From IMG/VR virus record IMGVR_UViG_3300032562_000004, positions 171,813 to 235,812 of that record: DNA of 64,000 bases. One strand, written 5' to 3'. Made by a program: the position numbers and the translations under genes. Under the pieces are notes generated by a model. The model was not told where the DNA came from and searched no databases. It saw only the letters and a list, made by a program, of their open reading frames with translations. Below, piece by piece: positions 951-20,672 of the stretch (positions are counted from its first letter, which is position 1; each line of letters starts with the position of its first letter).

Positions 951-1292
951 CTGTTATTTTCTGTTTCGACGGATAACTCCGCAAAGCAGTGATTAAACTG
1001 CTAATGTTTGGCGTTGTGCTGTACGAGCAGAGAAACGAATTCCCTTACCTGAAACAGTTACTTCGCCTTTAGATGCGTTTGCATTTAAGTTTTTCGCTTG
1101 ATTTACAGTCATCGCCTACTGTGTTGCCTCTTTCATTATCTCACCATGTCGAAACCTTGTCATCCCCACTGAAACATACTACAGCTTTTGGCCTCGCTAC
1201 CGATAACTCGGTTCGGTAATATGCTTCGGTGGAGATGCCGGGAATCGAACCCGGGTCCACAGCGCCTTCACTACGAAGGAATTACAACAATT
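951..1292 (-). ncRNA. ssrA: Circularly permuted (two-piece) tmRNA: acceptor piece ~1292..1228, intervening segment 1227..1168, coding piece 1167..~951
   Basis: T-arm plus 3' acceptor strand GGACCCGGGTTCGATTCCCGG-CATCTCC-ACC precedes the 5' strand GGGGATG-ACAAGGTTTCGAC. The 7-bp acceptor stem has G3.U70. A resume context AAACTTAAAT-GCA-AAC is followed by a tag ORF. Confidence 0.9.
993..1082 (-). other. tmRNA tag reading frame ANASKGEVTVSGKGIRFSARTAQRQTLAV*
   Basis: Resume codon GCA at 1082..1080, 29 sense codons, TAA at 995..993. Confidence 0.8.
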
Positions 1293-1294
1293 CT

Positions 1295-1498
1295 TTACAG
1301 CGGAAGAATATTTGATGCTTGCTTGCCTTTAGGGCCTGCCACTACATCGAATGTTACCGCTTGATTCTCTTTTAAACTCTTAAAACCATTTGTGCTAATT
1401 GCGGAAAAATGTGCAAACAATTCCTCACCACCAGCATCGGGGGTAATAAATCCAAACCCTTTTGCATCATTAAACCACTTTACTTTACCTGTTGCCAT
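1295..1498 (-). CDS. cspA: Cold-shock protein (CSD)
   Basis: [18 protein letters not shown] (RNP1) and LFAHFSAI (RNP2), 67 aa. Confidence 0.97.
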
Positions 1499-1784: not shown

Positions 1785-1860
1785 TGGTGGTCCGGGTAGG
1801 ACTTGCACCCACACTCCCCGAATTATGAGTTCGACGCTTTACTTTTTAAGCTACCGGGCC
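1785..1860 (-). tRNA. tRNA with CAU anticodon, probably Ile2 (lysidine type) rather than Met
   Basis: GGCCCGG...TCGAA-CTCATAA-TTCGG...GTGGG-TGCAAGT-CCTAC-CCGGACC-A-CCA, 76 nt with encoded CCA. C4-G69/C5-G68 pairs favour Ile2. Confidence 0.88.
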
Positions 1861-8372: not shown

Positions 8373-8734
8373 CTTACTTCACTCCTGCCATCGCCAACAT
8401 CGCGACTTTTAACTACTCGCGGCGACATTGCTTCGTATTGTTCTGCTGTTTCTAATACTACATTACGACATACTGCGGTAAACCAACGATCAATAATATC
8501 TGCGTCTGTATCTTTAGGATCCATCATATAGCCATGGCGAACCAAATCGGCAATCATTTTGTCATTCCAATCAAATTCAAATGCGCCTGAATTAATATCG
8601 TTAGGATCTATGTCCATACTTAATACTTCAAAGTATGCTTCGCCTTTTTCAGTAGCAACTTGTTTAGCTGACTTAGCTTGTTGTTGCGCTACAGCCGCAA
8701 TTGGCTTCTTTTTAAAAAAATCAAATATTCCCAT
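8369..8734 (-). CDS. Hypothetical phage protein
   Basis: 121-aa ORF. Confidence 0.7.
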   Translation of the reverse strand: MGIFDFFKKKPIAAVAQQQAKSAKQVATEKGEAYFEVLSMDIDPNDINSGAFEFDWNDKMIADLVRHGYMMDPKDTDADIIDRWFTAVCRNVVLETAEQYEAMSPRVVKSRDVGDGRSEVS

Positions 8735-9837
8735 TACTGATCCTTAAACAAATTTATTTCTTCCCATGGCAAATCTTTTTTGCCAAAGTGACCATAGTTA
8801 GTAGTCTTACTGTATATAGGTCTAAACAGCTTAAAGCGATTAATAATACCTAACGGAGTTAAATCTACATTATTATAAATCCACTCTGTTAACGCACGAC
8901 TATCACCGTCTGACTCTATATAAAAACTCATAGGTTGTGCTACCCCAATAGCATAACTAATTTGTACAGTAGCCCAGTTAGCACGACCAGCGGCAACAAT
9001 ATTCTTAGCCAAATAGCGAGCCATGTAAGCGGCGCTACGGTCTACCTTAGTAGGATCCTTGCCACTAAACGCACCACCGCCGTGTGGGCTATATCCACCG
9101 TATGTGTCTACAATAATCTTACGACCTGTTAATCCTGTGTCACCATCAGGACCACCTACTACAAAACGCCCTGTTGGGTTAATATAAAATTCTGTCTTTT
9201 CATCTACAAATTCTGTAGGTAATATATTACGAATAATATTGCCAACGTCTTTACGAACAGTTTCGATATCAACATCGGCATTATGTTGTGTAGAACAAAC
9301 TACTTTAGCAATACGAATAGGTTTGGCATCATCGCTGTATTCAAAAGTAACTTGACTCTTAGCATCTGGTCCAAGATAGTTAAGTACACCTTGTTTACGA
9401 ACTTGTGTTAACCCTTCTACAATTCTATGACTCCAGTAAATTGCCGAAGGCATAAAGTTTTCTGTTTCGTTACAAGCATATCCAAACATTAATCCTTGGT
9501 CGCCTGCGCCAAAGTTGTCTGTGCCTAACGCAATATCTGCGGACTGGCCATGTAGCAAGTTAATAATTTTAACAGTACGCCAATCAAATCCTGACTGCTC
9601 GTAACCAATATCTTTGATGACTCGACGAATAGCTGATTCTACTTCTTCTGAATGTAATACACCTTTATATTCTCCAGCAACAATTACTGTATCTGTAGTT
9701 ACCAATGTTTCACAAGCACAACGAAGACTAGTGTCTTCTTTACTCATTACTAAATCTAAAATAGCATCACTAATAGCATCTGCTACTTTGTCTGGATGTC
9801 CTTCTGATACTGATTCGCTTGTGAATAGATAGCTCAT
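8734..9837 (-). CDS. metK: S-adenosylmethionine synthetase
   Basis: FTSESVSEGHPDK, GAGDQG, GGGAFSGKDPTKVDRS signatures; start at MSYLFTSES (9837). Confidence 0.98.
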   Translation of the reverse strand: MSYLFTSESVSEGHPDKVADAISDAILDLVMSKEDTSLRCACETLVTTDTVIVAGEYKGVLHSEEVESAIRRVIKDIGYEQSGFDWRTVKIINLLHGQSADIALGTDNFGAGDQGLMFGYACNETENFMPSAIYWSHRIVEGLTQVRKQGVLNYLGPDAKSQVTFEYSDDAKPIRIAKVVCSTQHNADVDIETVRKDVGNIIRNILPTEFVDEKTEFYINPTGRFVVGGPDGDTGLTGRKIIVDTYGGYSPHGGGAFSGKDPTKVDRSAAYMARYLAKNIVAAGRANWATVQISYAIGVAQPMSFYIESDGDSRALTEWIYNNVDLTPLGIINRFKLFRPIYSKTTNYGHFGKKDLPWEEINLFKDQ

Positions 9838-10079
9838 TAATTTCCTTTTAATTTCCATATAAGATGTTCGGTACTGCTATGCCATTTGTATTGATACGCT
9901 GGTTCGCCTGGCCCGGACCATCCAGCTACGCCACGATAGGCATATTCTAGCCAGATTAACTTATTACTTAGCGCACATTTATGGGGTAGCCAAGAAAATT
10001 TGAGTTCCCAAAATGCCTTTCTATAAAAAGGATCGATTAAATCAGGTATAGGCATACCATGAAATCCTTGTGGATACAA
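9837..10079 (-). CDS. Hypothetical protein
   Basis: 80-aa ORF. Confidence 0.55.
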   Translation of the reverse strand: MYPQGFHGMPIPDLIDPFYRKAFWELKFSWLPHKCALSNKLIWLEYAYRGVAGWSGPGEPAYQYKWHSSTEHLIWKLKGN

Positions 10080-10934
10080 TCAAGTACCCCAGTCGTTTTT
10101 CCAAAGAACCACTTGAAGTCTATCACTATAGCGTAAGCCATTTGCCATAGCTAGTTCTGCTACTCGACGATTATTCAAAGTATAAACACTTTCAACCCCG
10201 CCAACTGGCATTAAGTAAATTGGGCCTTTAAACCCAGCCGCTTGATAAATTTGCGATACTGCTAGTGCTTCTTCGGCATCTTCTTCTGTAGAGATTACAA
10301 ATTTTAAATAAGTGTATCCAACTTCTTGATATTCGCAAACTACTTCAGGCTTAATAGCATCTTCACGCAATTCACCAGAGCAACTTAATTTAGCACTAAC
10401 ACTAAATGTAACTTGTTTAGGCTTGCCAACTCCATCTAATGACCAGTTAATCAAAAACTCTTTAAACTCTGGACTTAGCTTTTGAGTGCCATTCGTTTCA
10501 AAAGTAATTTCTCGTAAATTGGCCATCTTAGGATTGTTCAGCAAGTCTGGATAAGCACGTTGCCAACCTAACAAAGGTTCTCCGCCTGTGATAACCAAGT
10601 GCTCAGTGCCCCACTGACCAAATGGCAGAATCTCCATAATGCGATTAGCAATAGCATCTGACTCCATTAAAGGACTTAAATCTTTAAAGCGCGGATCCCA
10701 ACTAGCATAGCTATCACATCCTGTACTTACTAATGGCAAGTCTTCATATTTGGTAAACATATGAGCAACTTCTGCTATTTCTTCTACTTCTGTGCTAAGT
10801 TGACCTTTGGGCATACCAAATCCAGCACAGCGGAAATTACAGCCGAAAGTTCTAAGGAATATACTGGGCACTCCCATATAGCGACCTTCGCCTTGAATAC
10901 TATAAAATAGTTCTGCTACTTTTAATTTACTCAC
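10080..10934 (-). CDS. queE: 7-carboxy-7-deazaguanine synthase (radical SAM)
   Basis: ELFYSIQGEG...FLRTFGCNFRC...CDS, ITGGEP, ETNGT. Confidence 0.92.
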   Translation of the reverse strand: MSKLKVAELFYSIQGEGRYMGVPSIFLRTFGCNFRCAGFGMPKGQLSTEVEEIAEVAHMFTKYEDLPLVSTGCDSYASWDPRFKDLSPLMESDAIANRIMEILPFGQWGTEHLVITGGEPLLGWQRAYPDLLNNPKMANLREITFETNGTQKLSPEFKEFLINWSLDGVGKPKQVTFSVSAKLSCSGELREDAIKPEVVCEYQEVGYTYLKFVISTEEDAEEALAVSQIYQAAGFKGPIYLMPVGGVESVYTLNNRRVAELAMANGLRYSDRLQVVLWKNDWGT

Positions 10935-11220
10935 CGAATTCCTCTCTCATCATTTGATCATGTTCATTTTCTTCTTTAGCACCTTTCCGTGCTTTTTGTT
11001 CTTGATAGCCGCGACTACCGTCTCCTTTGCCTTTTACTCTGCGCCCACACTCCGTACATTCGTGAAATCCTTGTACAAACTCTTTTCCACTATCAAATGT
11101 TATTACTTCTGTGCCTTCGATTGTGAATTTTTTGTAACACTGGTTAAAGGTACAAACCACTTTCATAGTTTCAGGATCTATAAAAGATACGTCTACTTTT
11201 TTCTTTGACAATTTACTCAT
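10927..11220 (-). CDS. Hypothetical, Cys-motif (zinc-ribbon-like) protein
   Basis: CTFNQC...CTEC; start set at MSKLSKK (11220). Confidence 0.55.
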   Translation of the reverse strand: MSKLSKKKVDVSFIDPETMKVVCTFNQCYKKFTIEGTEVITFDSGKEFVQGFHECTECGRRVKGKGDGSRGYQEQKARKGAKEENEHDQMMREEFGE

Positions 11221-11771
11221 TTCTTCCACCACCCTTCATAAGGAAAATTAACCCATCGAGGGTCTTCGTTTTTATTAATCTCCATACCAGCATAGTTAAT
11301 AGTTAATTCACTCTTACTTGGTAAGTTATCGATTAGTACTGCTACTCGTACATTGTTGCCCCAAACTTGTTCCCAAACTTCTGTAGCCTGCGGTAAGCAA
11401 CTTGATTGCCAATCTTGTTTAATCCAGTTTAGAGTAGCACCTGTATCATTAATATCATCAACGATAAGAATATTTTTGCGTAGCTTTTTCTTAGAATATG
11501 ATTCGTGATCTTTGCGGATTTCTAAGTTGACATACCCAAAGGCATCACTTGCCATTCCGCAATCACTTACACAATCTTGATCATCCCGTAATGATACTTT
11601 AAGTGTTTGCATTGGCACGTCTAGATATTGGGATATAAGAACAGCTGGAAGTAACCCGCCACGAGTAAGTCCTACAACATAATCGGGTTTCCAGCCGTCT
11701 TTCGTAATTTGACGTAGAATGTCTTGAGTTAAACATTCTACGTCTTTGTAAGTTAAATTAGTATGGTCCAT
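11217..11771 (-). CDS. Type I phosphoribosyltransferase (Gpt/Hpt-like)
   Basis: VVGLTRGGLLPA, LIVDDINDTGAT PRPP-binding motif, WVNFPYE. Confidence 0.9.
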   Translation of the reverse strand: MDHTNLTYKDVECLTQDILRQITKDGWKPDYVVGLTRGGLLPAVLISQYLDVPMQTLKVSLRDDQDCVSDCGMASDAFGYVNLEIRKDHESYSKKKLRKNILIVDDINDTGATLNWIKQDWQSSCLPQATEVWEQVWGNNVRVAVLIDNLPSKSELTINYAGMEINKNEDPRWVNFPYEGWWKK

Positions 11772-11777
11772 ACAAGT

Positions 11778-11806
11778 ATTATACACACTTGTATTTAGGT
11801 CGTCAA
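11778..11806 (-). promoter_or_regulatory. sigma70 promoter with nested CTAAATA late motif
   Basis: TTGACG-ACCTAAATACAAGTGTG-TATAAT. Confidence 0.75.
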
Positions 11807-11810
11807 GCTA

Positions 11811-12704
11811 TTACGATAAAATTTGGCGAATACCTTCTTCAAACGACATAGGATTATAGTCAGGCATAATCGAACGAAGTTTGGTAATATCAGGACGGCG
11901 ATTAGCAACAGAACCTGGCATACTTGGTAACTGTTCAAATACTGCGTCTGGATGACCTAATTCGGTAGCAATAACTTTAACAGCATCACCAATTGAAATC
12001 TCGCGGTCATTGCCCACATTAACCAATTCACGAGTAGTGTTTTCGGCAACATAGATACTAGCACGGATAGCATCTGATACATGACAGAAGCTACGAGTTT
12101 CTTGTGCGCCGATTACAGAGAAAATACCGTTTTTAATCTTGTTAATTTGGTCACCTAAGAAATGACCTTGTTTACTGTTTTCACCATATACATTAAAGTA
12201 ACGGATCATAACATAAGGTAAGTCCGAATTAGCCAAATAGTTTTCACTAGTAATCTTAGCCAAACGATAACTCCAACGAGCATTGTGTATATCTTTAATA
12301 AACACATCTGAATTCTCTGGAACTGGACTCGTAGGATCATCTGCTACAATTTCACTGCTCGAAGCATATACTAAGCTCTTAAGATTAGTACATTTACGAG
12401 CAAAATTGAAAATGTTTAAATCGCAAACAAAGTTATTTTCTAATACCTTGTTAGGCATTTTGTAAAAGTTAGTTGTACCGTTAATAGCACCATAGTGATA
12501 AATGTAATCAAAATCAGTTGGCAATAATTCATCAAACAATACTGTGTTATTTAAGTCAGCGGCAACAAACTTATCACAATCAGGAATACTTGAACTACGA
12601 CTATGATTATCTAGTGCCCATACTTCATTGCCAGCGGCTTTAAGTTGTTTACAAAATTCTGTGCCTAGCAATCCGCTAGCGCCTGTAATTAAAATTTTAG
12701 CCAT
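11811..12704 (-). CDS. NAD-dependent nucleotide-sugar epimerase/dehydratase (extended SDR)
   Basis: ITGASGLLG, YASSSE, YRLAK (YxxxK), RYFNVYG. Confidence 0.92.
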   Translation of the reverse strand: MAKILITGASGLLGTEFCKQLKAAGNEVWALDNHSRSSSIPDCDKFVAADLNNTVLFDELLPTDFDYIYHYGAINGTTNFYKMPNKVLENNFVCDLNIFNFARKCTNLKSLVYASSSEIVADDPTSPVPENSDVFIKDIHNARWSYRLAKITSENYLANSDLPYVMIRYFNVYGENSKQGHFLGDQINKIKNGIFSVIGAQETRSFCHVSDAIRASIYVAENTTRELVNVGNDREISIGDAVKVIATELGHPDAVFEQLPSMPGSVANRRPDITKLRSIMPDYNPMSFEEGIRQILS

Positions 12705-13473
12705 TTACAATTTTCTCATTATCTTTAATAGTTGCTTCAATCATAGCGAAGTCAAGTCCTAAGTTCTTAACTAAGTTAGCCCACGCACTTGTATCTTTTG
12801 GCAAGCAATGTCCGCCAAAGCCACGCAAGTTTTCATTACACATCAAATATGCTGGATTAATACAATCACGCTTGGTAATAGCATTGTAAACATTATTATA
12901 ATCTGCGCCTAATGCTTTACATACTTCATAAGCAATATTAGCAAAAATAATTTGTACAGAATGATTTACATTGTTGAAGTATTTGATAACTTCTGCTTCT
13001 GCTGGCTTAACACAAGCAACATTTTGTGGCAAGTTACCATGGATAGCTTTAACAATAATATAATCTTCTTCGCGATTACTGCCAATTACTAATAAATCAT
13101 GATTGTACATAAAATCAGCTAACGCTGTTTTAGCACGAAGAAATTCTGGAACGGAGCAAATACGCAAGTTAGGGTATTGGGCAGATAGCTTATCGCAAGT
13201 ACCAGGAACACAAGTACTTTTAAGTCCTACTAAACCTTTGTAGCCAGCGTCGTTTAATTCGCCAACTACCTTTTCTACAATACTTGTATCGCAATCACCA
13301 TTTGGCGCTTGGTTAGTAGGAACACAAATGAATACACATTCTGTATCTAATACATCATTAAGTGTTGATCCTTCGTATGCTGGATCAAAGAAACTCATTT
13401 GGTGACCCAAATGATTTAATCCTTCATAAACTGCTTTGCCTACTGTGCCTTTTCCTATTAAACCAATCTTCAT
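12697..13473 (-). CDS. UDP-glucose/GDP-mannose dehydrogenase family (lacking the C-terminal domain)
   Basis: IGLIGKGTVG, FICVPT, KST, PEFLR, GFGGHCLPKD. Confidence 0.9.
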   Translation of the reverse strand: MKIGLIGKGTVGKAVYEGLNHLGHQMSFFDPAYEGSTLNDVLDTECVFICVPTNQAPNGDCDTSIVEKVVGELNDAGYKGLVGLKSTCVPGTCDKLSAQYPNLRICSVPEFLRAKTALADFMYNHDLLVIGSNREEDYIIVKAIHGNLPQNVACVKPAEAEVIKYFNNVNHSVQIIFANIAYEVCKALGADYNNVYNAITKRDCINPAYLMCNENLRGFGGHCLPKDTSAWANLVKNLGLDFAMIEATIKDNEKIVNG

Positions 13474-14070
13474 TCAATTCTCCTCTGGATATTTCATATC
13501 AACTAGTTGATTACTCTGAGCTGACGCCATGCTTAATATTTCTTGTGCCACATCTTCGGGTTCTAAACATATAGCCGAAGTTTTCATATCTATCATTTTA
13601 GTGCGTGTGCGTACTGGATTAATTAATCCTAATGTAACTTCACTGCCTTTAAAATACTCACAGGCACCTTGCCATACATTATATAGTGCTGCTTTACTGG
13701 CGGCGTATAAAATGTAGTCTTTGCGTCCTGACTTATACGCACTAGATCCAACCATAATAATCTTTACAGGTTTCTTAGTACCGTTACTAATGTAATGACG
13801 AATAATGGACCAATTCGATCCAATGTTTATATCAAATGTATTTGAATGTGTTTCGTTATTAGTTTTATCGAAATGACCTACACAATTTACAATAACATCT
13901 GGATCATTACTTGATAACATTTCTTGTATTTTAATATCGCTATCTAAATAAACAAAATTTACTTGATTTTTGCTAATAGGTTTGACAATATAGCCGGCTC
14001 GAGTGAAGGCTTCACAGGTAGCTTGACCGATGCCGCCATTAGATCCAAATATAACTGCTCGTTTAATCAT
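13474..14070 (-). CDS. Short-chain dehydrogenase/reductase
   Basis: IFGSNGGIG, YAASK. Confidence 0.85.
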   Translation of the reverse strand: MIKRAVIFGSNGGIGQATCEAFTRAGYIVKPISKNQVNFVYLDSDIKIQEMLSSNDPDVIVNCVGHFDKTNNETHSNTFDINIGSNWSIIRHYISNGTKKPVKIIMVGSSAYKSGRKDYILYAASKAALYNVWQGACEYFKGSEVTLGLINPVRTRTKMIDMKTSAICLEPEDVAQEILSMASAQSNQLVDMKYPEEN

Positions 14071-14476
14071 GTTTTGGTAAAATAGAATCTACACGGAATG
14101 TATCATTCTCGTAATCTTCGCCACCGCGTGGGCCTTCAGCAAAAGCAATAAACACACAGCCATCGCTACCAGCTTCCATACCGTGGATCTCATTAGGTTC
14201 GCTAATAACCATATCCCCAGGACCGGCAGTGATTCCAACGGCTGGCTCATCACTATCAACAGGCTTAGAGTAATAGTGTAAAGTACCAGCTAACACATAG
14301 GTATACTGCGTAGTAAGTTTGTGATAATGATTAGCACGAATAGCACCAGGAGCGTTAGTAATAATACAAGCATGATTCATATTTGCTTTGTAAAAAATAT
14401 CGGTAATCGAACCACGGTCGTCTGCGTGTTTGCCTAAACCTTCTTCTGTATTGTTATAAATGTTGTAATGTCTCAT
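14063..14476 (-). CDS. Cupin, sugar 3,4-ketoisomerase/epimerase-like (FdtA/WxcM type)
   Basis: DDRGSI, GAIRANHYH, EPNEIHG. Confidence 0.8.
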   Translation of the reverse strand: MRHYNIYNNTEEGLGKHADDRGSITDIFYKANMNHACIITNAPGAIRANHYHKLTTQYTYVLAGTLHYYSKPVDSDEPAVGITAGPGDMVISEPNEIHGMEAGSDGCVFIAFAEGPRGGEDYENDTFRVDSILPKHD

Positions 14477-15702
14477 TGTGATATAAACCTTGTGTTAGGG
14501 TTGATGCTTAATAGAGCTTTCTTTAGTGGCTCTCCGATATTCCAGCTTAGTACTAATGCGTATGGTTTTTCGTGTTTAGCAAACTCGTCATCGCTACGAA
14601 TAGGAATACGAGTTAATGGTGTGTATTTGCCTTGTTTAAATTGACTAGCATCTGTAATACAAGTTAATACTGTTTTATCTAGTTTGTGCCAGTTTAACCA
14701 AGTATTAGCTTTGGCTGCCGCCCCAACACCAATAATAACAGCATCAGGTTCATCTGCTAAAATTTGATAAAAGTTAAGTAGCCACGCATTGCGTTGCTTT
14801 TCAAACTTGTCTTGTAATTTGGTATAGAAAGTAGTATCAAACAAACCCATAGCAGTTTCGTTTTCGATAGCACCACGAACCAAGAATGGCATTCCGTTGT
14901 TAGTAGTATGTTTAGCAATAACTCTAATACTGCCGCCATGATAATCAACTATATCAAAATCTACAATATCTAAACCAACTTGCTGTAGCAAGTTCCAAGC
15001 ACTCTTAATAGTAAAGTAAGAAATGTGTTCGTGATAAACCATATCTACGAATCGACCACTTTCAATCATACTTGCCCAGTACGGTAACTCAAATACAAAT
15101 ATACCATCTTTATCTAATAACTGTGAAACTCCCGAAGCAAAGTTAACAGGATCGTTAGCATGATTGAATACATTGTTAGCTATAATTACCGAAGCCTTGC
15201 CATGTTCTTCGGCAACTTCAACTGCTGTATCAATATTGAATAAAGCAGCTAATGAGTCGACTCCTTTTTCTTTGGCAATATCGCACATAGTTTGGGAAGA
15301 ATCGATCCCAAGTACTTTGGTATCTGTATCTTGAAATTGTTTAATTAAGTAAGCATCGTTACTACCAATCTCTACAACCAATCCCTCAGTGTTGTATTTG
15401 CTTTTGATAGTAGAAGCATATTCATCCCAGTGATCTCTGGCAGTTTTTGAATTTGACGATGTATAGCTATAACTGTATAAGTTATAACGATCTTCGGCAT
15501 CGCTAACGAATCCTAATTGGATTTGCCCTGAACTAGAATTTAAATGTAGTTGTAGTGGAAATACTGGTTCAGACATATGAAGCTGATCTTCAGCAATGAA
15601 TGTATCAGCATAAGCGTGTTGCCCGAAGTCTAAAATTTTTGTAACAAACTCGCCTGTAATTAAACAGCGATCTAAGTGGGTGCTTTCAGTTATTTTACTC
15701 AT
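14473..15702 (-). CDS. NDP-hexose C-methyltransferase
   Basis: N-terminal C(L)ITG/DFG..AYA..F, VEIGSNDA, NVFNH, YHEHISYF, HGGSIR, GAAAKANT, SWN. Confidence 0.88.
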   Translation of the reverse strand: MSKITESTHLDRCLITGEFVTKILDFGQHAYADTFIAEDQLHMSEPVFPLQLHLNSSSGQIQLGFVSDAEDRYNLYSYSYTSSNSKTARDHWDEYASTIKSKYNTEGLVVEIGSNDAYLIKQFQDTDTKVLGIDSSQTMCDIAKEKGVDSLAALFNIDTAVEVAEEHGKASVIIANNVFNHANDPVNFASGVSQLLDKDGIFVFELPYWASMIESGRFVDMVYHEHISYFTIKSAWNLLQQVGLDIVDFDIVDYHGGSIRVIAKHTTNNGMPFLVRGAIENETAMGLFDTTFYTKLQDKFEKQRNAWLLNFYQILADEPDAVIIGVGAAAKANTWLNWHKLDKTVLTCITDASQFKQGKYTPLTRIPIRSDDEFAKHEKPYALVLSWNIGEPLKKALLSINPNTRFISQ

Positions 15703-16529
15703 TATCTTTTTACCGGAGTTTGTATCATTTGTTTATTAATATCATTCTTTTTAAGTTTTTCCCAAGGATCCTGTTGACCTAGTTTTACATTTTGCCAGAA
15801 AGAAAGGTCTTTACCTTTTGACACTAGATAAGAAGCAATCTTTTCAGCGTCAACTAATCTGCCATTGCCATATGAAGGATGATGGAAATCTTTTGGACTA
15901 CTAGGATTACCTTCTAATACCTCACGATTTTTAAATGTAAGGTCTGCGTTGCTACCAGTTAAGTCATGTCTATCGTGTGTAGCGTAAATTTCTACAATTT
16001 CCATAATGTCAAGCATATAAGCAATTTGACTTAACTCAGCATCAATCATTTGATGACGTGAGAAGAATCCAAATAAGTCATACCATTCTTTAGGAACAAT
16101 AGGGAAAATAGAATATGGATGTTCGCGATGAACATGGATTTTAAGTAGTTTGAATTCACCAGTATGATCAGTGATAATTTTATCCCAACCTGTAGTTTCC
16201 ATCAAAGCATCGTCATTCCAAACAAACAACCAATCAGCTGATGCTTGTGCGGCTAAGCCATTATAGTAACGATTTAATCCAACATAACCCATTGGTTCAA
16301 ATACCATTACAGTATAATGAATTCCTTTTTGTTCCATCCAAGGCTGGATTGATTCGGAAAAATATTTTAATCCAACTTCATCATCATTATCAAATGCTAA
16401 TAATAATTGGACCCCGTCAATATCAAGTACTCTGTTAAAAACACTAATAATACTTAATTTTAATGCTGTAGTTCTGCCTCTTGTAGGAAGCATTACCGCT
16501 ATTTTATAATCGTTTTTGGACTGGGCCAT
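15702..16529 (-). CDS. Glycosyltransferase, GT-A (GT2-like)
   Basis: AVMLPTRGR, WLFVWNDDA (DxD-like). Confidence 0.75.
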   Translation of the reverse strand: MAQSKNDYKIAVMLPTRGRTTALKLSIISVFNRVLDIDGVQLLLAFDNDDEVGLKYFSESIQPWMEQKGIHYTVMVFEPMGYVGLNRYYNGLAAQASADWLFVWNDDALMETTGWDKIITDHTGEFKLLKIHVHREHPYSIFPIVPKEWYDLFGFFSRHQMIDAELSQIAYMLDIMEIVEIYATHDRHDLTGSNADLTFKNREVLEGNPSSPKDFHHPSYGNGRLVDAEKIASYLVSKGKDLSFWQNVKLGQQDPWEKLKKNDINKQMIQTPVKR

Positions 16530-16588
16530 TGTTATCCTTTGTACAGTTTGTACTATTTACTGGATAATATAGGTACTTAATAATTTTC

Positions 16589-16873
16589 TTAATCTTTGTA
16601 GATAGTGGACCATGTAACTAACTTAGCTGACTTTTTTAAGGTAGCATCGTGTAGTTCTTTCTCAGTAAATAGTTCGTGAGCTTTGAGTAATTCAATTAAT
16701 AAAGTGACATCGCCTAATTCTTGTATCAATTCTTCGCGTTGAGTGCGCCCAGATTTGAGATTTTCTCCTTCTATCCCAAATCTGCGGCACTTGCTTATAG
16801 CTTGAATAACTTCAGCACACTCTTCTTGTAGAATGTCTAAAATTTCGTTAATTTTAGGCGAAGAGGTCTTCAT
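16589..16873 (-). CDS. MazG-like pyrophosphohydrolase
   Basis: LQEECAEVIQA...ELGDV. Confidence 0.8.
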   Translation of the reverse strand: MKTSSPKINEILDILQEECAEVIQAISKCRRFGIEGENLKSGRTQREELIQELGDVTLLIELLKAHELFTEKELHDATLKKSAKLVTWSTIYKD

Positions 16874-17357
16874 TCCATTCCCTGTGTCCTTCGCGATACG
16901 CCATGTTAGACATTGTTTCGCGAACTTCTACACGATAGCACCATAAGCGGTCAGCTTCGGATTGTCCCCACATATCAGGTATGTAAACTCCGTTAACATA
17001 TTTGTAAAGTTGATCAGCTAGGCCTTCACAACCTAATTTAGGAAGAATGGTTAGTTTAGCAAGATTGCGTTTTTCCATTTCTTTATAAAAGTCAAGTTCC
17101 GGATCATCTTCTGCTACTAACAATGTATGGTCAAACTGTGACTCTAATACCGATTTCAATTCTTTAAGTCCACCGTAATCGGCTGCCCAGTTGCGTACAT
17201 CTAAATCATTTGTACCAAAATAAAACTTCATACTAAATGAATAGCCATGAATTAAATTACAATGACTATCAGCTCTCCATTGACGATAAGCGCAAGGAAA
17301 TGCGTCATGATATTCTTTAGTACTTGTGTATTTGTATTGTATTGCTTGGTTTGCCAT
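16854..17357 (-). CDS. queD: 6-carboxy-5,6,7,8-tetrahydropterin synthase
   Basis: CNLIHGY, DYGGLK, FDHTLL, GCEGLA, VRET. Confidence 0.9.
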   Translation of the reverse strand: MANQAIQYKYTSTKEYHDAFPCAYRQWRADSHCNLIHGYSFSMKFYFGTNDLDVRNWAADYGGLKELKSVLESQFDHTLLVAEDDPELDFYKEMEKRNLAKLTILPKLGCEGLADQLYKYVNGVYIPDMWGQSEADRLWCYRVEVRETMSNMAYREGHREWNEDLFA

Positions 17358-17359
17358 TT

Positions 17360-17441
17360 ATTTCTCCTATGTTAGATTATAGCATAGGCAGCAGAATTTG
17401 TATACCGGGATGATGCTCAAAAGACCGGTTGAAACTATTTA
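17360..17441 (-). promoter_or_regulatory. Structured 5' leader of queD with late promoter and SD-sequestering hairpin
   Basis: TAAATA; ACCGG/CCGGT stem; CCTATG/CATAGG stem overlapping AGGAG. Confidence 0.55.
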
Positions 17442-17695
17442 TTATCAGATTCTGGTGTAGCAGCAGGAGCTACTGGCTTTTCGGTAGTACCCATCTTTTT
17501 AGCAAGGTATGGATCAACATATGGTTTGTTAACTGTTTCGTCGGCCACATTCCAACCAATGGCACTAAAGAATCCTACAATTAACCAAGTTCCTATAAGT
17601 TCAATGATCATATTTTTATTATTACGAAAAAAGATATTGTATAAATGCGACAAACATAATCCAATATATATAAATTTCGTGTAGTATCTGTTCAA
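17435..17695 (-). CDS. Small membrane protein (start probably internal, MIIELIGTW)
   Basis: Hydrophobic segment LIGTWLIVGFFSAIGW. Confidence 0.55.
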   Translation of the reverse strand: MNRYYTKFIYIGLCLSHLYNIFFRNNKNMIIELIGTWLIVGFFSAIGWNVADETVNKPYVDPYLAKKMGTTEKPVAPAATPESDNK

Positions 17696-18496
17696 TCATC
17701 TCGGGGCAAAGTCCTGTTGTAGTTTGATATTGTCCATAAACTCTTTCTTAGTGCCAGCATCTTCATTAAATGCTCCACGCAATACAGTAGTCTGTGTCAG
17801 ACTAGAGTGTGCCATAATACCTCTATTTTCGCAACAACCGTGAACAGCCTGTATATATACACCTACGTCTTTACTATCAGTTGCTTTCATTATTTCTTTA
17901 GCGATGTCATTACATAGTTCCTCTTGTAAAGTCCCACGGCGAGCACACCATTGAGCAATCCTTGTATACTTAGAAAGACCAATGAGCTTGTTGGCAGCGA
18001 TGATCCCGATATAGGCAACCCCACTAACTGGCTGATGATGATGACTACACATACTACGCAATTCACTGCGAACAACCAACATACCTTCATATCTATCCTC
18101 TGAATTATTTGGAAACGCTGTACAATCTGGAGCCGGCTCATATCGCCCTGCCATAATTTCGTTAAAATACATCTTAGCTAATCTTTTAGCTGTGCCTTTA
18201 CTGTTGGGATCATTTTCGCGATCAATAAGCAATGCGTCTAGTACACCTTCAAATGCTATAGTGGCATTAGCAATTAATTCATCTCTGTGCCCGACTACAT
18301 ACTCACTAATGTTATCCCCAGCCCAGAAGCGTTTCTTATCGCGTTTCATATTAAAACGGATAGCATCGGCTAAGGTTGCTTCTTCGTACCCTTTGTCGCT
18401 CATCATCATTGCGGCATCTTCGTAGCCAGGATGATACGGTGCTTCTTCTACTAATTTCTTAGCGTTTTCTCTATCTTCTGTTGTAAATGATGTCAT
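17696..18496 (-). CDS. folE: GTP cyclohydrolase I
   Basis: SMCSHH, IGLSKYTR, LQEEL, HGCCENRG. Confidence 0.95.
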   Translation of the reverse strand: MTSFTTEDRENAKKLVEEAPYHPGYEDAAMMMSDKGYEEATLADAIRFNMKRDKKRFWAGDNISEYVVGHRDELIANATIAFEGVLDALLIDRENDPNSKGTAKRLAKMYFNEIMAGRYEPAPDCTAFPNNSEDRYEGMLVVRSELRSMCSHHHQPVSGVAYIGIIAANKLIGLSKYTRIAQWCARRGTLQEELCNDIAKEIMKATDSKDVGVYIQAVHGCCENRGIMAHSSLTQTTVLRGAFNEDAGTKKEFMDNIKLQQDFAPR

Positions 18497-18891
18497 TCGT
18501 TTTCCTCTGATAATCTGTCAATAATTTCTTGTTGCTCTTGTTCTTTCATTTGATTTATGTCTAACTTTTCAAATCTATAGCCATATCTCATTGATGGCAT
18601 AAGCGCAATCTTTTCAAACATATCCATTTGGTCAGTTGTAACGCCATAGATATAGCCTCTAACTTCTTCACTTTCTGTTTCCGCGTTAGCAAGTTTAGAA
18701 CCTCTTTTGGAAGCGCCATGTAGTGTAGAACGCCAAGCATAGTATTCTTCATCGATTGAATCAACAAACCCTTTTAATTTAGGATCATCCTTTTTAGCAA
18801 CCCATACAATGTATAAGTTGTCAGATTCATATAACAAAGTATGCTCAGTTTCGTTAGAAGTTATACGCTCAAATTGTTCTGTTAGTATCAT
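18493..18891 (-). CDS. Hypothetical protein
   Basis: 132-aa ORF. Confidence 0.6.
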   Translation of the reverse strand: MILTEQFERITSNETEHTLLYESDNLYIVWVAKKDDPKLKGFVDSIDEEYYAWRSTLHGASKRGSKLANAETESEEVRGYIYGVTTDQMDMFEKIALMPSMRYGYRFEKLDINQMKEQEQQEIIDRLSEENE

Positions 18892-18901
18892 ATATGCTTT
18901 T

Positions 18902-18930
18902 ATTATAAAGGTTATTTAGGTTTAAGTCAA
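18902..18930 (-). promoter_or_regulatory. sigma70 promoter with nested CTAAATA late motif
   Basis: TTGACT-TAAACCTAAATAACCTT-TATAAT. Confidence 0.75.
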
Positions 18931-18933
18931 TTA

Positions 18934-19989
18934 CTATGTAATATTTTTTAACAGATTTGTAGCCGAAAAGAAGTTTTCAGAAAGATCCTTGGCTTGTTTT
19001 TCGATATATGGAATTCGAACATCATATGATTCCATATCTTCTATAATAACCTTACATAAGTCTGGACGATAAACATTATACGCTTCATAACTTTCAGTCC
19101 ATATACTAGGATATTTGAAATGATTATAATACATTTCAGTATAACTTAATCGATCCGGAACTAGGGGAATGGCTCCTAGTAATGCGCCTTCGTAACAGCT
19201 AATGCCAAGTGTTTCTTGTAAGTTAGCAGAGAACACAATCTTAGCTTCGCCCAACAATGTGTGATATTCATGTTTAGTAAGTTCTTGTTCTTGACAAACA
19301 ACGAATTCATATTGTGGTAAGTGTGTAGCCAAATCTTTAAAAATGTCTACTTGTTTTTCTGGAGCAATACGATGTGGAAATAAGATTAAGTCACGCTTTT
19401 TTAAATTCTTATAAGGAGCCAGTTCAGCTTCCATATACTCCATGGGCCATCCTGTTTGTGTTACATAAGGATTGGTACCATTATCTTCTACATCAAATAA
19501 GTTTTTAGCAAACATTTTGATATGAAAATCTGTAGCAAAGTAGTTGTGGTCGTATGAAAAGAAATAACTCTTTTCAGCGTGACGCACCCATGGCTTATCT
19601 CCAACTAAGCGTCCAAGAAAGTCTTGAGGATCATAACTGCCAGCATGCCATAAGCCATGTGTGGTTACAGGAATCTGTAACAACTCGCTCATGTATTTTA
19701 AGTTTATGATGCCAGGATGCCAAGCATCAGTAAAAATGAAATGATCACCAGGATTAACTGCTCCGGAGCAAAATAAACGGCCCATCTGCTCAACTTGATT
19801 AGCCTTGTATATATTGGTGCCACCAAAATTAAGAAAAGCACCAGGAGTAGTGGCTTTAGGAATATCCTCAGGGCCAGCGATAATTTGAACATCGTGTCCT
19901 CTCTTTCTAAGAAGGTTAGGTAAGTGAGTTTTCCACTCGCAGGTATAACGAGTGGAAACACTTTCTAGATCGACTAAAAAAACGGTCAA
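18934..19989 (-). CDS. Glycosyltransferase, GT-B (GT4-like)
   Basis: ILFPHRIAPEKQ, QETLGISCYEG (E-x7-E-like), P.RLSY.E. Confidence 0.75.
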   Translation of the reverse strand: MTVFLVDLESVSTRYTCEWKTHLPNLLRKRGHDVQIIAGPEDIPKATTPGAFLNFGGTNIYKANQVEQMGRLFCSGAVNPGDHFIFTDAWHPGIINLKYMSELLQIPVTTHGLWHAGSYDPQDFLGRLVGDKPWVRHAEKSYFFSYDHNYFATDFHIKMFAKNLFDVEDNGTNPYVTQTGWPMEYMEAELAPYKNLKKRDLILFPHRIAPEKQVDIFKDLATHLPQYEFVVCQEQELTKHEYHTLLGEAKIVFSANLQETLGISCYEGALLGAIPLVPDRLSYTEMYYNHFKYPSIWTESYEAYNVYRPDLCKVIIEDMESYDVRIPYIEKQAKDLSENFFSATNLLKNIT

Positions 19990-20216: not shown

Positions 20217-20672
20217 TTAAAATTTAATACTATTTGTTGGGCGAGAAAGTTCATACTTTATGAGGCAACCGTTCTCACCATCTTCGGCTACTTCAATCCA
20301 TACAGCACGTTCAGGATACCTGGCGGCTATTTGTACATACAAGTCATCGGCTATCATTTCACATGACTTAAAATCGAGTTCTAAAATATCTTTACTGTAC
20401 AAACTTTCTAACCAGCGTTTAAATTGTATGAACTCCAAATCTCTATTCGAATGCCAAACATCAATCCAAACTTTAAACCAGAACACGTGCCTGTGTGGAC
20501 TAGCTAAAAAGCTAACATCATATTCGCCGGCTGTACATAAATTAGGATCTGTGGCTGCCGCTGGATAACGATGGATACCTTCTCTACGGAAAGTACACCA
20601 AATTTTACGCTCGGCATTTTCTTTAATGCGGTTAGCTTTTTCTAATAATGCTTGTTGTCGTTGTTGATCCAT
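20217..20672 (-). CDS. Second QueD-like T-fold protein
   Basis: HRHVF (HxH), HSNRDLEF, SCEMIADDL, VAEDGENG parallel the QueD motifs HGH...TAENxA...V.E. Confidence 0.55.
   Translation of the reverse strand: MDQQRQQALLEKANRIKENAERKIWCTFRREGIHRYPAAATDPNLCTAGEYDVSFLASPHRHVFWFKVWIDVWHSNRDLEFIQFKRWLESLYSKDILELDFKSCEMIADDLYVQIAARYPERAVWIEVAEDGENGCLIKYELSRPTNSIKF

Follow-up and report, generated by a model that had tools for sequence, protein, structure and literature searches.

What kind of regulatory element, if any, lies in the short leader of a queD-like gene carried by a freshwater phage? The question arises from a 64,000-nucleotide stretch of DNA (the window), which is part of a single 158.5-kb IMG/VR virus record (IMGVR_UViG_3300032562_000004) that is estimated by CheckV to be about 45% complete. 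DNA near-identical to it was found only in lake and freshwater metagenomes, and near-complete relatives measure 236–382 kb, so that this is a jumbo-phage lineage. Almost all genes lie on the minus strand. Read along that strand from position 19989 down to 8734, their order is a 351-aa ORF (possibly a glycosyltransferase, but without family match), a 132-aa ORF, FolE (17696–18496), an 86-aa ORF (17435–17695), a 77-nt intergenic leader, a QueD-like gene of the PTPS family (16854–17357), an overlapping MazG-like gene, several sugar-modifying enzymes, a purine-type phosphoribosyltransferase (11217–11786), a QueE-like radical-SAM enzyme (10080–10934), and MetK (8734–9858). The 167-aa product of the presumably regulated ORF matches Pfam PTPS (E = 3e-13) and phrog_2389 “QueD-like” (E = 5e-34), whereas TIGR03367 QueD reaches only 30 bits, below its cut-off of 89.

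A first-pass annotation of the sequence had described a riboswitch-like structured leader in front of this gene, comprising an H-type pseudoknot, a hairpin covering the Shine-Dalgarno (SD) sequence and an extended -10 motif within that hairpin, and had interpreted it either as a new ligand- or protein-sensing element or as a timing switch. The observation itself is confirmed, since each of these features is present on the minus strand within 17355–17442. The interpretation is supported in part: it is a conserved, structured leader containing a pseudoknot that matches none of the preQ1-I, -II and -III models, but the pseudoknot register, the role of the SD hairpin and the direction of the proposed switch had to be revised. 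In the following, we discuss why this element is considered a strong candidate for a new riboswitch class, for which ligand binding is, on present evidence, an inference.

A conserved pseudoknot in front of QueD-like genes

Taken alone, the window sequence is inconspicuous. The 88-nt leader folds at -14.1 kcal/mol, corresponding to z = -0.53 against shuffled sequences, and promoter-like sites in the region are no more frequent than in shuffles. Searches with Rfam 15 at gathering score gave no match at the element, neither in the window nor in 20 related loci, and at E ≤ 10 only chance-level rows were obtained, such as RF02980 freshwater-2 (13.3 bits), which aligns only to the SD/AUG part.

Comparison, in contrast, gives a clear picture. 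A search of IMG/VR with the QueD protein returned 80 loci at 85–100% protein identity, and 75 of these carry the element; of the remaining five, one is truncated, while in the other four queD abuts an upstream ORF. A covariance model of the core (R1) scores 56.9 bits in the window (E = 7e-18), with the next-best site in the 158.5-kb genome having E = 0.7. A degenerate pattern scan of IMG/VR, designed to avoid the commonest lineage, returned a further 80 loci, of which 77 score 20–56 bits with R1, and a second scan added about 35 more, resulting in a total of about 190 contigs of uncultured freshwater phages. The element is present once in the window genome and once in each of two near-complete relatives of 353 kb and 382 kb.

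The architecture is constant and amounts to 41–49 nt in total, the window copy being a 44-nt core at 17386–17429. It is composed of a 5-bp P1 helix (AGNGG/CCNCU), a loop L1 of 3–11 nt starting N-C-U, a 5-nt P2 5' strand (4–5 bp being formed in P2), a loop L2 of 5–6 and occasionally 7 nt, the P1 3' strand, a loop L3 of exactly 13 nt (NUANAWAYUCUGC), and a 5-nt P2 3' strand. In the window, P1 is formed by ACCGG (17425–17429) and CCGGT (17404–17408), which enclose a 16-nt loop. In the set retrieved by protein homology, P1 is 100% paired with compensatory changes in three pairs; in 87 distinct sequences of the enlarged set, 99.1% of cells are paired, 42 are double-change cells, three of five pairs show compensatory changes (pair 3 being CG in 53, AU in 22 and UA in 12 sequences), the two top pairs are G-C in 87 of 87, and none of 500 shuffles reaches this level.

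The pseudoknot helix P2 is formed by GAGCA (17414–17418) and UGCCU (17386–17390). In the protein-homology set, which no RNA pattern influenced, P2 is paired in 83% of cells against 52% in shuffles, with changes on both sides in all five pairs. In 79 distinct sequences of the enlarged set, the values are 82.5% against 50.7%, with 144 double-change cells against 59 and a covariation of 0.81 against 0.26, again reached by 0 of 500 shuffles; these sequences are, however, related to each other. The register proposed in the first-pass annotation, pairing AGCA (17414–17417) with UGCU (17390–17393), is possible in the window but lies 3 nt away from that of the family, whose 3' strand is 3 nt further downstream. 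This register corresponds to a slide of -3, for which only 49–60% of cells are paired and covariation is 0.20–0.25, compared to 82–83% and 0.77–0.81 for the family register, and every other slid register is worse as well. In the window's own copy, P2 is weak (-1.9 kcal/mol), consisting of a G.U pair, an A.C mismatch, and G-C, C-G and A-U pairs. Recurrent G.U pairs (e.g., GACGC with GUGUC) would be A.C on the other strand; hence, the structure belongs to the sense RNA rather than to duplex DNA.

The loops are also strongly conserved. L1 (UCUUUU in the window, 17419–17424) is pyrimidine-rich, with its second base being C in 101 and its third base U in 100 of 102 distinct cores, while the first base varies (U 43, C 30, A 28, G 1). 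L2 (UCAUC, 17409–17413) is UCAYC, UCAAC or UCAYUC in all cores, and its last base, C17409, which directly precedes the P1 3' strand, is invariant; a viral scan that allowed C, U or A at this position returned canonical hits but no credible non-C variant. In L3 (AUACAAAUUCUGC, 17391–17403), the A residues at positions 3, 5 and 7 and UCU at positions 9–11 are invariant in the 52 leaders found by protein homology (30 distinct in this segment). Since the second set was collected with a pattern fixing some loop bases, including the C of L1 for part of the set, invariance counts for the loops are partly circular; however, the protein-homology set shows the same invariants.

Wherever the downstream ORF could be read, every instance examined is followed by a PTPS/QueD-like ORF within 16–45 nt, with a short ORF intervening in one locus. 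These proteins fall into several subfamilies of 27–91% identity to that of the window, some with N-terminal extensions, and the neighbouring genes differ between contigs (epimerases, glycosyltransferases, KdsA-like, UvdE and others). blastn of the QueD region and of the 86-nt leader against 50,697 phage records found no homologous leader, and the cultured phages with the closest QueD (Acidovorax phage ACP17, Dinoroseobacter phage R5C and Xanthomonas phage X1) have queD abutting or overlapping the upstream ORF and give no R1 match. Of the matches from a non-exhaustive pattern scan of 185,579 prokaryote genomes, 80 were scored and none exceeded 20 bits with R1, the best one having no P1 on inspection, although this does not prove absence.

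Upstream of P1, a promoter-like box is frequently found. In the window this is ATAAATA (17436–17442), 6 nt upstream of P1, the last bases of which overlap the TAG stop of the 86-aa ORF. TAARTA lies within 22 nt of P1 (mode 5–8 nt) in 72 of 118 distinct leaders against 1.6% at random positions, and a -10-like hexamer lies 4–10 nt upstream in 36 of 118 against 4%; furthermore, ATAARTA is enriched in non-coding DNA of this genome (16 of 30 sites). The aptamer is therefore predicted to sit at the very 5' end of the mRNA. Both the promoter function and this position are inferred from sequence, as a search of sequencing runs yielded only lake and freshwater DNA metagenomes and no RNA.

Predicted expression platforms and the internal promoter-like motif

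Three platform types follow the same aptamer, and in each of them the P2 3' strand is predicted to double as the anti-RBS strand. In the window's lineage, CCTATG (17383–17388) and CATAGG (17366–17371) form the P3 hairpin (17366–17388) with an 11-nt loop, sequestering AGG of the SD (AGGAG, 17364–17368), which is located 6 nt before the ATG (17355–17357). This hairpin is not a separate add-on: its first three bases (CCU, 17386–17388) are the last three of the P2 3' strand, so the two structures exclude each other, and its energy drops from -4.6 kcal/mol to -0.7 kcal/mol once CCU is engaged in P2. The stem is invariant in this lineage and, thus, shows no covariation of its own. Other lineages replace it with a 7–8-bp helix between the P2 3' strand and the AUG region. 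In the second type, the P2 3' strand plus AUUG pairs with CAAUGGCA, which contains the start codon, while in the third type, including most loci of the second scan, the P2 3' strand plus (G/A)UC pairs with GAUGGC(A), closing a rod whose inner helices pair an anti-SD with the SD. RNAalifold on the platform of 35 leaders recovers the helix between the P2-adjacent strand and GAUGG, but only with one-sided changes, because the AUG side is fixed.

Across 117 distinct leaders, at least 2 nt of the P2 3' strand pair with the SD/AUG region in the unconstrained MFE fold in 104 cases. Forbidding the two P2 strands from other pairing, which mimics the pseudoknot, raises the mean unpaired probability of SD and AUG from 0.28 to 0.47 (83 leaders rise by more than 0.1, one falls), whereas blocking the same number of other aptamer bases gives 0.30. 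The simplest reading is a translational ON switch, in which whatever stabilises P2 would free the RBS, rather than a leader that simply silences long transcripts. However, this logic rests on nearest-neighbour folding without pseudoknot energies, and inner anti-SD hairpins could persist after P2 has formed, given that accessibility rises only to about 0.47.

In the P3 loop, the extended -10-like motif TGCTATAAT (17376–17384) is found, with TATACA (17399–17404), overlapping L3, placed 17 bp upstream as a -35-like hexamer. The motif resembles the strong sigma70-type promoters of the phage itself (TTGAC[AT]-N17-TATA[AC]T, of which 27 lie on the gene strand in non-coding DNA). In 39 of 46 distinct hairpin-type leaders, L3, P2 and the P3 loop together spell a -35-like hexamer, a 16–18-bp spacer and TGnTAnnnT. 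A transcript from such a promoter would start in or just after the P3 loop and would lack both the aptamer and the anti-SD strand. The timing switch, in which short transcripts are translated and long ones silenced, is hence plausible for this lineage, but it cannot explain the element, because the other platform types keep the aptamer without any such motif; at most, it is a lineage-specific extra.

Interpretation and competing explanations

In our view, the element is best explained as the aptamer-like core of a previously uncatalogued cis-regulatory RNA, which appears specific to uncultured freshwater, largely jumbo, phages and sits at the predicted 5' end of the mRNA for a QueD-like enzyme; we assign this reading a probability of roughly 0.6. 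What the comparison establishes, with very high confidence, is the conserved pseudoknot with compensatory changes in both helices, its association with QueD-like ORFs and its single occurrence per genome. The sequestration of the SD and/or the AUG by a helix starting with the P2 3' strand, and its withdrawal upon pseudoknot formation to turn queD translation ON, are well-supported inferences, while the sensing of a small molecule, most likely one with a guanine-like Watson-Crick face that would be read by the invariant C, is likely yet stands at about even odds. The element shows a conserved aptamer with covarying helices in a 5' leader tied to one gene function, and a variable expression platform sharing nucleotides with the aptamer. 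Literature searches for a fourth preQ1 class, a preQ0 or 7-deazaguanine riboswitch, or a phage queD riboswitch found no report.

The invariant C suggests a 2-amino-4-oxo-pyrimidine face, which is shared by guanine, 7-deazaguanines and pterins. In a loose ranking, candidate ligands are a 7-deazapurine of the pathway (CDG, preQ0, preQ1 or a nucleotide of it), the pterin substrate made by the upstream FolE (7,8-dihydroneopterin triphosphate), and guanine or dG compounds. Five near-complete relatives have no TGT/DpdA and only weak N-terminal PP-loop matches to QueC, but keep the QueE-like gene (5 of 5) and the phosphoribosyltransferase (4 of 5); the pathway, therefore, probably stops at CDG or proceeds through a nucleotide, rather than through preQ0 and DNA transglycosylation. 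QueD is the step committing the product of FolE to this route. An ON switch on a biosynthetic gene would be unusual if the ligand were an end product. For an ON switch, a substrate or feed-forward signal (dihydroneopterin triphosphate) or a pathway or purine metabolite are the sensible candidates.

A more far-reaching reading, which we regard as tentative, is that of a phage-restricted riboswitch class distinct from preQ1-I, -II and -III, which would switch ON translation of the committed enzyme of a 7-deazapurine pathway in response to CDG, preQ0 or a nucleotide of it, or the pterin supplied by the phage's own FolE, in jumbo freshwater phages possessing FolE, QueD-like, QueE-like and a phosphoribosyltransferase, but neither QueC nor DpdA/TGT. 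Riboswitch classes confined to viruses are almost unknown, and a validated one would show phages evolving their own metabolite sensors rather than borrowing bacterial ones. Given its small size and roughly 100 distinct natural variants with clean covariation, the RNA is immediately suitable for in-line probing, ITC and crystallography. It marks the control point of an unusual phage pathway (FolE, QueD-like with HGY, QueE-like, phosphoribosyltransferase, MazG, MetK and sugar enzymes, without QueC or DpdA), and identification of the ligand would help to identify the product of that pathway.

Among the alternatives, a structured operator for a protein (a phage translational repressor or activator, or QueD itself) or a ligand-independent folding element remains a serious rival, albeit a less probable one. 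In the latter case, the pseudoknot would form first during transcription and merely set how long the RBS stays open. Phage mRNAs are often controlled by RNA-binding proteins, conserved loops are equally expected for a protein site, and the competition between P2 and the anti-RBS helix works with any stabiliser of P2. On the other hand, the aptamer stays nearly constant while the downstream protein diverges to 27% identity and the genomic neighbourhood changes, which argues against autoregulation by QueD, and the small size, the G-C floor, the invariant C next to P1 and the invariant adenines in L3 are hallmarks of the purine-type pocket in preQ1-I (PMC11625349, PMC10622847).

That the element is simply a divergent preQ1-I riboswitch binding preQ1 or preQ0 and repressing queD is unlikely. 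This reading is favoured by the same topology, a P1 (AGNGG/CCNCU) that is identical to that of B. subtilis in some members, UC or AC preceding the P1 3' strand, adenines in the 3' tail and the link to a queuosine-pathway-type gene (PMC11625349 for the preQ1-I features), but it is contradicted by the failure of the family model, the variable first base of L1, the six invariant bases (YUCUGC) intervening between the adenines and P2, and an SD that lies 20–45 nt downstream and pairs with the P2 3' strand instead of being part of it, which gives the opposite polarity. Least probable is a purely DNA-level explanation, in which a sigma70-type promoter (TTTACA-N17-TGCTATAAT; 10 of 12 with a TG extension in the window) preceded by a weak terminator-like hairpin of the folE transcript is conserved and the pseudoknot is incidental, because, despite the 39 of 46 leaders with this motif and the evident use of such promoters by the phage, leaders of the other two platform types keep P1, P2, L2 and L3 without a -10 there, spacer bases of a promoter would not covary with bases 25 nt upstream, the G.U pairs are strand-specific, and P1 has no U-tract behind it, so that the terminator reading of P1 was likewise rejected.

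Comparison with known systems

The pseudoknot in the leader of the T4 gene 32 mRNA is likewise a phage 5'-leader H-type pseudoknot used for translational control, where it nucleates autoregulation; it is, however, a nucleation site for a protein (gp32), followed by an unstructured A/U-rich tract, without alternative pairing with the RBS and without a link to a metabolic enzyme. The THF-II riboswitch (folE motif) and THF-I are small RNAs of the GTP cyclohydrolase/pterin neighbourhood that read the 2-amino-4-oxo-pyrimidine face shared by pterins, guanine and 7-deazaguanines (PMC6800512), but they have a different fold (a hairpin with an internal loop), are OFF switches upstream of folE in bacteria, and gave no Rfam match here.

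In polarity and size, the element resembles the guanidine-III (ykkC-III) riboswitch, a roughly 41-nt H-type pseudoknot thought to switch translation ON because ligand-stabilised pseudoknot formation removes a strand that would otherwise mask the RBS. There is, however, no sequence or loop similarity and no Rfam match, and the genes concerned (guanidine exporters and carboxylases) are unrelated. As to preQ1-II (RF01054) and preQ1-III (RF02680), which are HLout pseudoknots of about 80–100 nt, the former gives only 14.4 bits against a cut-off of 47, resting on the SD/AUG part, and the latter gives no hit.

The closest known system is the preQ1-I riboswitch (RF00522; types I–III), based on the defining features summarised in PMC11625349 and PMC10622847. 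The covariance model of this family (gathering score 39 bits) gives no hit at the element at E ≤ 10 in the whole genome, in 551 nt or in 96 nt, with four A-rich chance hits (8–16 bits) elsewhere in the genome, and none at gathering score in the window or in 20 related loci. L1 is longer and starts N-C-U instead of the conserved U/UU (U6/U7) of preQ1-I. In L3, which is fixed at 13 nt, the invariant adenines would fit A-minor contacts with P1, although YUCUGC separates them from P2, whereas in preQ1-I the last adenines directly precede the P2 3' strand and contact P1 and the ligand. The SD is not inside or next to P2, but lies 18–22 nt (in the window) to about 45 nt downstream, and no terminator follows, implying ON instead of OFF. 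By the available tests, the element is, thus, not a member of preQ1-I, and it was found only in phage contigs and only before QueD-like genes. Nevertheless, it may work in a similar way, as it shares with preQ1-I the very small H-type pseudoknot, the 5-bp P1 closed by an invariant G-C pair, the invariant C immediately 5' of the P1 3' strand (mostly preceded by U, as in type I), the short P2 formed by the hairpin loop and the 3' tail, conserved adenines in L3, and the association with a gene of the GTP-to-7-deazaguanine route. This resemblance, combined with the inferred reversed polarity, makes the element a natural test of how one pseudoknot scaffold is rewired and, possibly, re-targeted to another 7-deazapurine or to a pterin.

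Position of the element and promoter-like sequences

In most cases, the placement of the pseudoknot element is directly before queD; however, in one 344-kb relative (locus L054, positions 2767-2809), it lies about 190 nt upstream of queD, with a short ORF in between. In the window, the segment 17355-17407 (-) shows a weak match to the orphan Rfam motif freshwater-2 (RF02980), scoring 13.3 bits against a cut-off of 49.9. This match rests on the SD-AUG segment, while the motif's own hairpin does not fit the element.

Across the whole genome (G000), 27 near-consensus sigma70-type promoters of the form TTGAC[AT]-N17-TATA[AC]T are found on the gene strand in non-coding DNA (e.g., window 18902-18930 (-)). 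In addition, ATAARTA boxes are enriched upstream of ORFs, with 16 of 30 sites located in the 9% of the genome that is non-coding, and these may constitute a second, possibly late, promoter class. At window positions 1024-1330 (-) and 1788-1860 (-), the phage carries a tmRNA gene, matched by both the beta_tmRNA model (RF01850; 117.6 bits) and the permuted tmRNA model (RF04321; 118.4 bits), and a tRNA (57.8 bits). The betaproteobacterial tmRNA type may hint at the host.

QueD-like proteins encoded behind the element

The QueD-like protein encoded at window 16854-17357 (-) and the homologues behind every copy of the element contain C-x3-HGY instead of the canonical C-x3-HGH and, furthermore, have Tyr or Phe in place of the first zinc-binding His, while the Cys, Asp-His and Glu motifs are kept. 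The only PDB relative found by sequence is a CPH4 synthase (7v0f; E = 0.005). The proteins may form a functionally distinct PTPS subfamily. A 151-aa ORF at window 20217-20672 (-) also carries PTPS-like motifs (H...HRH); it has no Pfam or NCBIfam hit, but matches phrog_17812, a family of unknown function (E = 4e-31), and may be a second, divergent PTPS-fold protein in the same cluster.

Gene content of the cluster and the suggested 7-deazapurine route

The cluster at window 8734-19989 (-) holds FolE, the QueD-like protein, a MazG-like protein, sugar-modifying enzymes, a purine-type phosphoribosyltransferase (PRTase), a QueE-like protein and MetK. Neither TGT/DpdA nor a convincing QueC was found in this record or in five near-complete relatives of 236-382 kb (G001-G005; the records behind loci L005, L054, L070, L108 and L001), whereas the QueE-like protein (5 of 5) and the PRTase (4 of 5) are conserved. 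This suggests a DpdA-independent, PRTase-based 7-deazapurine nucleotide route, with a logic like that of tubercidin and toyocamycin.
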